DNA from: Macrostomum lignano
Taxonomy: Eukaryota
DNA length: 64,000 nucleotides
Direction: 5' to 3'
Assembly (NCBI GenBank): GCA_002269645.1
Contig: NIVC01000035.1
Span: 434,001-498,000 of the forward strand
Part shown: positions 37,701 through 40,700 of the stretch, one piece after another
How positions within the stretch are numbered: the stretch's first letter is position 1
Layout of the letters: the number at the start of each line of letters is the position of its first letter
Notes under the pieces: generated by a model
Database searches by the model: none
Told to the model about the DNA's origin: nothing
The model's input: the letters and a program-made list of their open reading frames with translations, nothing else
Made by a program: the position numbers and the translations under genes

Positions 37701-40700
37701 GTGTGTCTGTCTGTCTGTCTGTCTGTCTGTCTGTCTGTCTGTCTGTCTGTCTGTCTGTCTGTCTGTCTGTCTGTCTGTCTGTCTGTCTGTCTGTCTGTCT
37801 GTCTGTCTGTCTGTCTGTCTGTCTGTCTGTCTGTCTGTCTGTCTGTCTGTCTGTCTGTCTGTCTGTCTGTCTGTCTGTCTGTCTGTCTGTCTGTCTGTCT
37901 GTCTGTCTGTGTCTGTCTGTCTGTCTGTCTGTGTGTCTGTCTGTCTGTCTGTCTGTCTGTCTGTCTGTCTGTGTGTGTGTCTGTCTGTCTGTCTGTCTGT
38001 CTGTCTGTCTGTCTGTCTGTCTGTGTGTCTGTCTGTCTGTCTGTCTGTCTGTCTGTGTCTGTCTGTGTGTCTGTCTGTCTGTCTGTCTGTCTGTCTGTCT
38101 GTCTGTCTGTCTGTCTGTCTGTCTGTCTGTCTGTCTGTCTGTCTGTCTGTCTGTCTGTCTGTCTGTCTGTCTGTCTGTCTGTCTGTCTGTCAAAGTGCTC
38201 TAGAAGTGCTCTAGAAGTGCTCAACAGACAGACCTCTTTTATGATCAAAGATACGACAGGGAACATGAGACACTTCGAAGCAATAATGAAAGGCCGGTTA
38301 TCACTTTCAAGCAAAAAAATCCTTACCTCATACTGCAGCAGTCGGTACCGCCTGTGAACCCTCTTGGCCAGTTTCCAGTTAATGAACACATCCACACAGT
38401 ACTCAGTCACCGGGCTGCTCAGTCGACACCGACCCAAACTCGAGCTGCCCTCCCGAAGCTTACGAATCGCCCGACGATCTTTCAGCTCAGCCGTGGCTGC
38501 CATGGAGCTGGGAATAAGCTGGGCTGAGGCCTCGGAGTACGAGATGCCTCCGTCTGGCAGAACAGCCCCCACCCGGAACAGGTACCGGCCATTGATTAGC
38601 AAGTCGTTGAGTCGAATTCTCGGAGCTGTCGTAAACGCCAAACTTTTCCAAGTTGGCGGCGACCACTGAAGGGTCGGGCTGTCTGAGCTGGTCAGGTTGG
38701 CCTGGACAAGAAACACGAGTGGCTCTCCCCGGGGACTCAAACTGGACGGGCTGCTGTAGCCAGCTGACCAGTCAAGATTGGCAGTCGATGTGAACGTTTT
38801 GCTCGGCATAAACTGTTGCATCAGCTGCACTTGCTCGATGCGGGGACGAGGTGGCCGAGAAGGGGAATCTGATGAAGGAATCGAGGGATGTCGGACAGAG
38901 TCTGAGGATCTGATGAAGGAATCGAGGGATGTCGGACAGAGTCTGAGGATCTGATGAAGGAATCGAGGGATGTTGGACAGTGAGTCTGAGGATCTGATGA
39001 AGGAATCGAGGGATGTCGGACAGAGTCTGAGGATCTGATGAAGGAATCGAGGGATGTTGGACAGTGAGTCTGAGGATCTGATGAAGGAATCGAGGGATGT
39101 TGGACAGTGAGTCTGAGGATCTGATGAAGGAATCGAGGGATGTTGGACAGTGAGTCTGAGGATCTGATGAAGGAATCGAGGGATGTTGGACAGTGAGTCT
39201 GAGGATCTGATGAAGGAATCGAGGGATGTTGGACAGTGAGTCTAAGGATTTGATGAAGGAATCGAGGGATGTTGGACAGTGAGTCTGAGGATCTGATGAA
39301 GGAATCGAGGGATGTTGTACAGAGTCTGAGGATCTGATGAAGGAATCGAAGGATGTTGGACAGTCTGGGAATCTGATGAAGGAATCGAAGGATGTTGGAC
39401 AGTCTGGGAATCTGATGAAGGAATCGAAGGATGTTGGACAGTCTGAGAATCTGATGAAGGAATCGAGGGATGTTGGACAGTGAGTCTGAGGATCTGATGA
39501 AAAAATCGAGGAATGTTGGACAGAGTCTGGGAATCTGATGAAGGAATCGAGGGATTTTGGCCTCGATTGAAAGTTCAAGGACCTATAGGACCTATTGAAA
39601 GTTCAAGCAAAAACTGGTGTGCGAGCCTCATACCTCCAATAGTAGCCTCCCGAGAAAAAAGTCTCTCCAAAGCTTCGCACGACTGTCTGCAGGTCCTAGG
39701 CTCGAATCCTTGGTCCAGTTCGACCGCTGTGCAGAACGTGGAGCAGCTGCGAATGCTGGAGTACTTTCCCGTGTCCGTTGAGTAGTGCATGCAAGCAAAG
39801 GTGCACTGGAATTTCAGTTGGGTTCCGTTTTTTATTTATCCTGTAGACTGGAAATGGCTCTGTGAACTTTGAATAGCGATTTTCGCTTATGTTATTGAAA
39901 TTCGACCTTTCCCTGATGGTAATGAAAAACAATTGACGAGGCTGTAATTCTGACACAGCTTTCATCTCTCTTGTCAACAGTGGCTTGACGGCCTGGCAAC
40001 CACTGTGCGCGACCTTTTCGTGAAACACTTCGGGATTTTGTTGGTAGCATATTTAATAGATAGATAGATAGATAGATAGATAGATAGATAGATAGATAGA
40101 TTGATTGATAGATAGATAGATTGATAGATAGATAGATAAATAGATAGATAGATAGATAGATAGATAGATAGATAGATAGATAGATAGATAGATAGATAGA
40201 TAGATAGATAGATAGATAGATTGATTGATTGATAGATAGATAGATTGATAGATAGATAGATAAATAGATAGATAGATAGATAGATAGATAGATAGATAGA
40301 TAGATAGATAGATAGATAGATAGATAGATAGATAGATAGATAGATAGATAGATATAGATAGATAGATAGATAGATAGATAGATAGATAGATTGATAGATA
40401 GATAGATTGATAGATAGATATATTGATAGATTGATAGATTGATAGATAGATAGATAGATAGATAGATAGATAGATAGATAGATAGATAGATAGATAGATA
40501 GATAGATAGATAGATAGATTGATAGATTGATAGATTGATAGTTAGATAGATAGATAGATAGATAGATAGATAGATAGATATGTAGATAGATAGATAGATA
40601 GATAGATAGATAGATAGATAGATAGATAGATAGATAGATTGATAGATAGATAGATTGATAGATAGATAGATTGATAGATTGATAGATAGATAGATAGATA

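Follow-up and report, generated by a model that had tools for sequence, protein, structure and literature searches.

The window analysed here is a 64,000-nucleotide (nt) stretch of the genome of the flatworm Macrostomum lignano (GenBank assembly GCA_002269645.1, Mlig_3_7; contig NIVC01000035.1, positions 434,001 to 498,000), and its central feature is Mlig019415g2, a minus-strand gene that is, by sequence, an anosmin by descent. In their textbook definition, anosmins, the Kallmann-syndrome proteins, comprise a Cys-rich region, a WAP domain and four fibronectin type III (FN3) repeats (PMC5860151). The Mlig019415 protein fails one of these defining features, as it is truly without a WAP four-disulfide-core domain. 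We describe below how one paralogue lost a domain, in a polyploid genome rich in repeats, and we regard this loss as real and cleanly demonstrated. The reading that we favor, with a probability of roughly 0.85, is that exons 3 and 4 of this anosmin-derived gene flank the place from which the WAP-coding part of an exon was lost after gene duplication, the rest of the gene having been kept.

The Mlig019415g2 gene and its product

A protein search with a 10-exon model built by hand from splice sites retrieved PAA93018.1, which is named "hypothetical protein BOX15_Mlig019415g2, partial"; the gene is thus already annotated in GenBank, as a hypothetical protein. Window positions 59763-19120 are 100% identical to positions 453120-493763 of the contig, the locus of PAA93018.1. 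The hand-built model reproduces the annotated protein, and two short exons (45381-45262 and 35133-35059) were added to it from the GenBank annotation, which for Mlig_3_7 derives from RNA-seq data assembled along the genome with StringTie/TACO, together with a mapped de novo transcriptome (PMC5730564). The complete gene has 12 exons on the minus strand, and all 11 of its introns are bounded by GT..AG:

Exon 1, 49700-49527, minus strand: ATG, signal peptide and first CxxxC motif (CTAKC); donor AAG|GTGAGT, phase 0; identical to residues 22-79 of the annotated protein
Exon 2, 45381-45262, minus strand: helical part of the Cys-rich N-terminal region; phase 0 to 0; homologous to exon 2 of the paralogue Mlig028549
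Exon 3, 39805-39634, minus strand: three CxxxC motifs of the anosmin Cys-box; donor G|GTATGA, phase 1
Intron 3, 39633-38869, minus strand: 765 nt, of which 73 nt are unique and are followed by a minisatellite whose last repeat unit supplies the 3' splice site
Exon 4, 38868-38327, minus strand: Pro-rich linker, FN3-1, basic linker and start of FN3-2; ends RLLQYE; donor GAG|GTAAGG, phase 0
Exon 5, 35133-35059, minus strand: middle of FN3-2
Exon 6, 33501-33445, minus strand: E-F strands of FN3-2
Exon 7, 32015-31901, minus strand: end of FN3-2; ends in phase 1
Exon 8, 31762-31562, minus strand: disordered linker and start of FN3-3 (anosmin-specific region)
Exon 9, 31461-31346, minus strand: part of FN3-3, bearing an anosmin-specific motif
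Exon 10, 30372-30198, minus strand: end of FN3-3 and the Cys-containing linker CFCTGSC...PPCP, conserved among flatworm anosmins
Exon 11, 30102-29913, minus strand: start of FN3-4; frameshift site at 29972-29975 in the window copy
Exon 12, 29123-28779, minus strand: end of FN3-4, Ser/Thr-rich stalk, hydrophobic C-terminal tail (GPI-signal-like) and stop codon

Mlig019415 exists as three near-identical genomic copies, g1, g2 and g3, of which g2 is the copy in the window. The protein begins with a hydrophobic leader (signal peptide), and its four CxxxC motifs align with the anosmin Cys-box. In an AlphaFold model of g1 (mean predicted local distance difference test score, 73.6), helices at residues 61-169 are followed by four beta-sandwich domains, the strands at residues 186-287 forming the FN3-1 region, and then by a disordered stalk and, at residues 764-780, a hydrophobic terminal helix. 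Between these helices and the first of the sandwiches, the model shows no small disulfide-rich domain. Its top Foldseek matches were four-FN3 fragments and 1ZLG, the deposited structure of human anosmin-1. A basic stretch lies directly after FN3-1. At the C-terminus, 23 hydrophobic residues follow a run of small ones (SPASAG), and we call this tail glycosylphosphatidylinositol (GPI)-signal-like from that pattern.

A hydrophobic stretch after small residues also ends the anosmins of Fasciola, Sparganum, Lingula and Solemya, as well as both M. lignano paralogues, which suggests from sequence that GPI anchoring may be widespread in invertebrate anosmins, in contrast to the His-rich tail of vertebrates. 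Putative GPI sites have been reported for planarian Anos1a and Caenorhabditis elegans KAL-1 (PMC12932670), and the C-terminus of Mlig019415 would fit those reports.

The assignment to the anosmins, with which the original prediction for this locus had begun, is borne out by searches in both directions. PAA93018.1 carries precomputed Pfam matches to PF28407 (Ig_ANOS1) and to fn3. In a HMMER search against 1.84 billion representative proteins, 34 matches were obtained; the named ones are annotated as anosmin-1 or "Kallmann syndrome 1" and come from Lingula, Capitella, Owenia, Liolophura, Fasciola, Taenia, Sparganum and Cichlidogyrus. Pfam recognizes a WAP domain in 16 of the 33 aligned matches and the anosmin Cys_box in 5 of them, and their consensus runs from the Cys-box through G.CP...KCC..C...C to FN3. 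The best match of the M. lignano protein in the PDB is human anosmin-1 (1ZLG, E = 7e-10). When a profile of six flatworm sequences was compared with the PDB, 1ZLG was matched from residue 20 to residue 647 at E = 2.4e-80, the next protein being titin at 2e-25. A tblastn match of human ANOS1 FN3-1 to 38725-38480, in exon 4, served as a lead only; our conclusions rest on the deposited 1ZLG. Finally, the Mlig019415 protein nests within the flatworm anosmin clade.

Two word-indexed searches were less informative. The one with exons 3 and 4 returned a single match, a frameshifted model from the older ML2 assembly called "Testis expressed 36", and the one with the flatworm profile returned generic FN3 proteins only. 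The UniRef entry bearing that name, A0A1I8IEQ1, is a frameshift-riddled ML2 model of the Mlig019415 locus itself, and the name is spurious because the model reads intronic and out-of-frame sequence. Our literature search found no paper that mentions anosmin in Macrostomum or the gene identifier.

Compared with the known anosmins (human ANOS1, C. elegans kal-1, Drosophila Kal-1 and planarian anos1a-d), Mlig019415 has the same signal peptide, the same Cys-box of CxxxC motifs, four FN3 domains including the specific third one, and the Cys-containing linker between FN3-3 and FN3-4. It differs in that the WAP domain between the Cys-box and FN3-1 is wholly absent, and from vertebrate anosmin in having no His-rich basic tail. 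The Asn that is mutated in Kallmann patients (RVAAVN) is not conserved in Mlig019415, nor is it in the other lophotrochozoan sequences aligned.

The exon 3/exon 4 junction and the WAP domain

Exon 3 stops where the WAP domain (G.CP..) starts in other anosmins. Exon 4 is preceded by ttccttcatcag, and the two exons meet, phase 1 to phase 1, in a junction codon G|AT that encodes D. The original prediction had placed this splice at 39634/38868, and the coordinates proved exact: the GenBank model PAA93018.1 uses the same junction. Because that annotation was made from an RNA-seq assembly, the junction is transcript-derived and not an ab initio guess. The junction is also not confined to the window. 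A protein cluster at 90% identity comprises the GenBank copies g1, g2 and g3, which lie on three different contigs, and one UniProt model from ML2, and the junction EATIG|DSP[ST]RPPRPR is common to all four; a second ML2 model, which is frameshifted by indels, has the same junction at the nucleotide level in a shifted frame.

Intron 3 had been described as 765 nt of almost nothing but minisatellite, with no room for a WAP exon, and both statements stand. Tandem Repeats Finder reports a 41-43-nt unit at 38867-39560, in 16.7 copies with 93% matches, which accounts for 692 of the 765 bases (91%). Neither the remaining 73 nt of unique sequence nor the three frames of the repeat contain a WAP-like cysteine pattern. 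The intron measures 847 nt in g1, 765 nt in g2 and 671 nt in g3, the copy number of the minisatellite differing between them; the donor, the unique leader (about 74 nt), the minisatellite and the acceptor of g1 and g3 are otherwise as in g2.

Dedicated searches for the domain agreed with the prediction of its absence. The PROSITE WAP pattern PS00317 (C-x-{C}-[DN]-x(2)-C-x(5)-C-C) had zero matches in the six frames of the window, and relaxed versions of it matched only translated tandem repeats or the opposite strand. Pfam WAP had no match at E <= 10 in the spliced protein, nor was there one in the coding strand from exon 1 through exon 4, all non-simple DNA of which was scanned in three frames, with X-masked translations where stops occurred. 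We also built a custom hidden Markov model (HMM) from 14 anosmin WAP domains. It detected the WAP domains of Opisthorchis, Taenia and Fasciola, which lay outside the training set and served as controls. No match with an E value below 0.4 came from the six frames of the window, from the g1 and g3 loci or from the locus of the paralogue Mlig028549, likewise translated in six frames. Consistent with these results, an alignment shows a clean gap in Mlig019415 from SGEATIG to DSPTRPP, exactly over the WAP domain of other anosmins.

The repeat in intron 3 has a further property. The 3' splice-site motif (ttccttcatcag|at) lies within its unit (38869-39560, minus strand), and exon 4 itself opens with six bases, ATTCCC, that still belong to the repeat. 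Because the motif is part of the unit, the intron offers 16 tandem candidate acceptors, of which only two would keep the frame open: the acceptor of the annotation and another that lies 252 nt upstream (exon start at 39120). Tandem repeats are common elsewhere in the gene: about 13.3 kb (64%) of its 20.9-kb span (28779-49700) is micro- or minisatellite, arrays occur in 8 of the 11 introns with periods of 4, 12, 19, 21, 23, 32, 34 and 43 nt, and intron 4 holds a 2.4-kb (TCTG)n array. We considered whether the minisatellite had replaced a WAP exon and rejected the idea, given that arrays fill so many of the introns and that the WAP-like segment of the paralogue is not a separate exon.

A sister paralogue and the timing of the loss

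The best match after Mlig019415 itself in the HMMER search was a second M. lignano gene, Mlig028549, whose copies g1-g3 (PAA52203.1, PAA94047.1 and PAA59582.1; 784 aa) matched at E = 2e-52. In a pairwise comparison, the two proteins are 28% identical over their full length (E = 2e-85). The two genes have in common their first two exons, a phase-1 intron before the FN3-1 exon and a hydrophobic tail. Mlig028549 differs in having an additional intron inside the Cys-box, a Gln-rich insertion in FN3-4 and, most relevant here, a 63-residue segment with 8 Cys at the WAP position. This segment, RLLSTNQGSCPAPDVIPAGCQKHQRRCQPEQERQLCHGLEPMKCCAGACGAS...FVC (GSCPAPD...KCCAGACGAS...FVC), has its cysteines in the register of the WAP domain of other anosmins, and the motifs G.CP and KCC..CG are retained in it (15634-15903 of the Mlig028549g3 locus). 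It was recognized neither by Pfam WAP nor by our custom HMM, and because no HMM recognizes it we describe it as a degenerate WAP-like module. Such degeneration suggests that constraint on the WAP domain was relaxed in this lineage before the domain was lost completely in one duplicate.

The exon structure of Mlig028549 indicates what was lost. Its 8-Cys segment shares an exon with the last CxxxC motif, and this exon ends GAG A|GTGGGT in phase 1; the FN3-1 exon then begins cag|TGCTG. The intron before FN3-1 thus occupies the same position, in the same phase, in both genes. The upstream exon of Mlig019415 stops about 63 codons earlier than its counterpart in Mlig028549. By this comparison, the lost part would be the 3', WAP-coding portion of an exon, and not a whole exon. 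The intron that follows the 8-Cys segment in Mlig028549g3 also begins with a tandem repeat.

In a neighbor-joining tree with 100 bootstraps, the flatworm anosmins were monophyletic (100), and the two M. lignano groups were sisters (100). The anosmins of Taenia, Opisthorchis, Fasciola and Sparganum/Spirometra share with Mlig019415 the motifs RVCIE, F.C.Y and CFCTPSC..P.CP; unlike Mlig019415, those of Taenia, Opisthorchis and Fasciola have kept a Pfam WAP signal, with scores of 24-25 bits in Opisthorchis, 20-21 in Taenia and 15 in Fasciola against a curated cut-off of 20.8 bits. The Sparganum anosmin has no Pfam WAP match, but its cysteine pattern aligns with the domain. The flatworm tree and the WAP signal in the parasitic flatworms together place the loss, as judged from these sequences, after a duplication that is absent from the sampled Neodermata. 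As the parasitic anosmins keep a WAP-like signal, weak though it is in Fasciola, the loss is specific to a lineage and to a paralogue; and as Mlig028549 still has a WAP-like segment, this is a domain loss in a duplicate gene and not the case of a WAP-less organism. The predicted absence of the domain therefore holds across the Mlig019415 copies and does not extend to the WAP-like Mlig028549 or to the parasitic flatworms with a WAP signal.

M. lignano has at least two anosmin paralogue groups and probably three. A 266-aa UniRef entry from this species, A0A1I8HVM7, named "NTR domain-containing protein", contains the anosmin FN3-3 motifs RRRVCIDS, FNCRY and C..PSC...P.QCP and, from these motifs, looks like a third, more divergent anosmin-like gene.

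Copy integrity, rival explanations and possible function

The three copies of Mlig019415 differ in the state of exon 11. In g1, the open reading frame (ORF) is intact, with 760 codons. In the window copy, the sequence at 29972-29975 is GGGG, where g1 and g3 have GGGGG; this 1-nt shorter G run shifts the frame within FN3-4, so that the annotated coding sequence ends at 29120. Exon 12 is in frame only without the exon 11 frameshift, as in g1. The claim that the anosmin architecture is otherwise retained thus holds for the Cys-box and four FN3 domains, and in full only for g1, FN3-4 being frameshifted in g2. In g3, a TAC>TAA change creates a nonsense codon at position 638 in exon 11, thirteen codons beyond the g2 frameshift. 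The g2 and g3 lesions could reflect true decay of redundant copies, or they could be errors of assembly; an ML2 model covers the lesion site for a g1-like copy only. We considered that the frame break in exon 11 might be bridged by a weak internal donor, CGA|GTCCGT, and rejected this, as its use would delete the conserved FRVRW strand and as g1 and g3 have the extra G.

Several points weigh against a WAP loss in an otherwise preserved gene. Exon 11 has an ORF-breaking change in two of the three assembled copies, which could mean that the gene is decaying rather than kept. Selection was estimated from only 22-23 substitutions per comparison, which give Nei-Gojobori ratios of non-synonymous to synonymous substitution rates (dN/dS) of 0.29 for g1 versus g2 and 0.22 for g1 versus g3, with non-synonymous changes below the neutral expectation in both comparisons (binomial p = 0.005 and 0.0005, respectively). 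Transcript support for the exon 3/exon 4 junction is at the level of the annotation and not of individual reads. The segment in Mlig028549, degenerate as it appears, is called WAP-like only because of where it lies, of the register of its cysteines and of the motifs G.CP and KCC..CG. The tree, in turn, was made without planarians and other macrostomids and bounds the timing of duplication and loss only roughly. Lastly, the GPI anchor, the heparan-sulfate binding and the receptor partner of the protein are all putative.

The most serious rival is that Mlig019415 is a redundant copy on its way to becoming a pseudogene, the WAP loss being the first of several lesions and without functional meaning. 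The g2 frameshift and the g3 nonsense codon, both in exon 11, would fit such decay, as would a WAP-like paralogue able to carry the ancestral function and a recent polyploid genome with much redundancy (PMC5730564). We nonetheless consider it unlikely, since g1 has kept an intact frame, dN/dS between copies is 0.2-0.3, splice sites are canonical at all 11 introns, transcripts were assembled for g1, g2 and g3, and both lesions may be assembly errors. Moreover, the protein has diverged by about 70% from its sister, and yet it has kept four FN3 folds, the conserved cysteines and the terminal signals.

An assembly or annotation artefact would leave a WAP exon collapsed in the minisatellite or simply missed, with the true transcript encoding the domain. 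Intron 3 is largely tandem repeat, long-read assemblies can mis-size such arrays, and array length does differ among the three copies; these differences, however, consist of whole repeats between identical unique flanks. The same junction is found at three separately assembled loci and in the older ML2 models, the annotation derives from RNA-seq, and WAP-coding potential is nil in any frame of the window and of the g1 and g3 loci. That a WAP exon should have collapsed at all three loci, in both assemblies and also in the transcriptome is not believable, and we judge an artefact of any such kind to be very improbable. That Mlig019415 encodes a generic multi-FN3 protein which resembles anosmin by chance is scarcely tenable. 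It is true that a Pfam scan of the protein detects fn3 alone (E = 7e-13) and that the PF17869 Cys_box model gives it no score, but its matches are colinear with anosmin-specific motifs outside the generic FN3 positions, including CFCT.SC...P.CP, and its four CxxxC motifs align with the anosmin Cys-box. The precomputed Ig_ANOS1 match, the predominance of anosmins in the HMMER list and the rank of human anosmin-1 in the PDB argue the same way.

In the reading that we prefer, loss of the WAP-coding part from a duplicate that is otherwise kept, the 3' part of the ancestral exon would have been removed, either because it was deleted or because the donor site moved, following a gene duplication not common to the sampled Neodermata. 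Because it has a signal peptide, the protein should enter the secretory pathway, and the product would be a secreted or membrane-tethered matrix protein. It may have kept the anosmin activities that depend on FN3 repeats, such as heparan-sulfate and receptor binding, adhesion and branching-type activity, and would be without whatever the WAP module modulates, while its WAP-like sister Mlig028549 may cover the ancestral role and configuration. The heparan-sulfate/fibroblast growth factor receptor role named by the original prediction is one that we infer by carrying it over from other species.

Work on engineered Kal-1 mutants is relevant to this proposal. In Drosophila, Kal-1 C127/128S, in which the WAP domain is disabled, still induced head skeleton and wing phenotypes (PMC1629024). 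According to the same paper, a C. elegans WAP disulfide mutant still induced axon branching, and destroying the WAP disulfides in fly and worm left several Kal-1 activities intact while abolishing others; its authors concluded there that the FN3 repeats play the main role and that the WAP domain modulates them (PMC1629024). A review has called the significance of WAP mutations "far from clear" (PMC5860151). Like the WAP-disabled Kal-1 proteins, Mlig019415 combines intact FN3 repeats with no functional WAP domain; unlike these proteins, which are point mutants engineered in transgenes, it has lost the whole module naturally and exists alongside a WAP-like paralogue.

By analogy with these systems, Mlig019415 would most likely be a surface-tethered, FN3-driven matrix co-factor that shed a modulatory module after duplication. 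A more specific version of this role, in which the gene is functional, selectively maintained and probably GPI-tethered, acts through its Cys-box and FN3 repeats alone (for example, as a heparan-sulfate/Robo-type co-factor like planarian Anos1a) and leaves the WAP-linked role to its sister, is a tentative suggestion to which we would give somewhat less than even odds.

A natural WAP-less paralogue with the rest of its architecture kept supports the idea that the FN3/Cys-box core can stand alone, and because RNA interference and transgenesis work in this flatworm, a gene with a WAP-like segment can be compared there with one that has none. If the more specific version just given is true, the two paralogues would be a natural separation-of-function pair, from which one could learn for which of the anosmin activities the WAP module is needed. 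Interest in flatworm anosmins is current because planarian Anos1a was recently linked to Robo signaling and stem-cell fate (PMC12932670). The significance of the finding is modest all the same: the loss of a domain in one duplicate is a common evolutionary event, and the window copy may be defective.

The window contains several other coding features outside the anosmin gene, found as ORFs:

20484-21512, minus strand, downstream of the anosmin gene: intronless 343-aa ORF encoding a full-length rhodopsin-family seven-transmembrane domain (Pfam 7tm_1, E = 3e-36)
About 5700-12900, minus strand: several long ORFs with Neuralized homology repeats (Pfam, E = 8e-81 at 11364-12881 and E = 4e-31 at 8481-9308), probably one gene with multiple such repeats and repeat-filled introns
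52688-55441, plus strand: two long ORFs (330 and 580 aa) with no Pfam match, overlapping an annotated 648-aa gene
62819-63490, minus strand: 224-aa ORF with a weak match to the QRICH1 domain (E = 2e-5)

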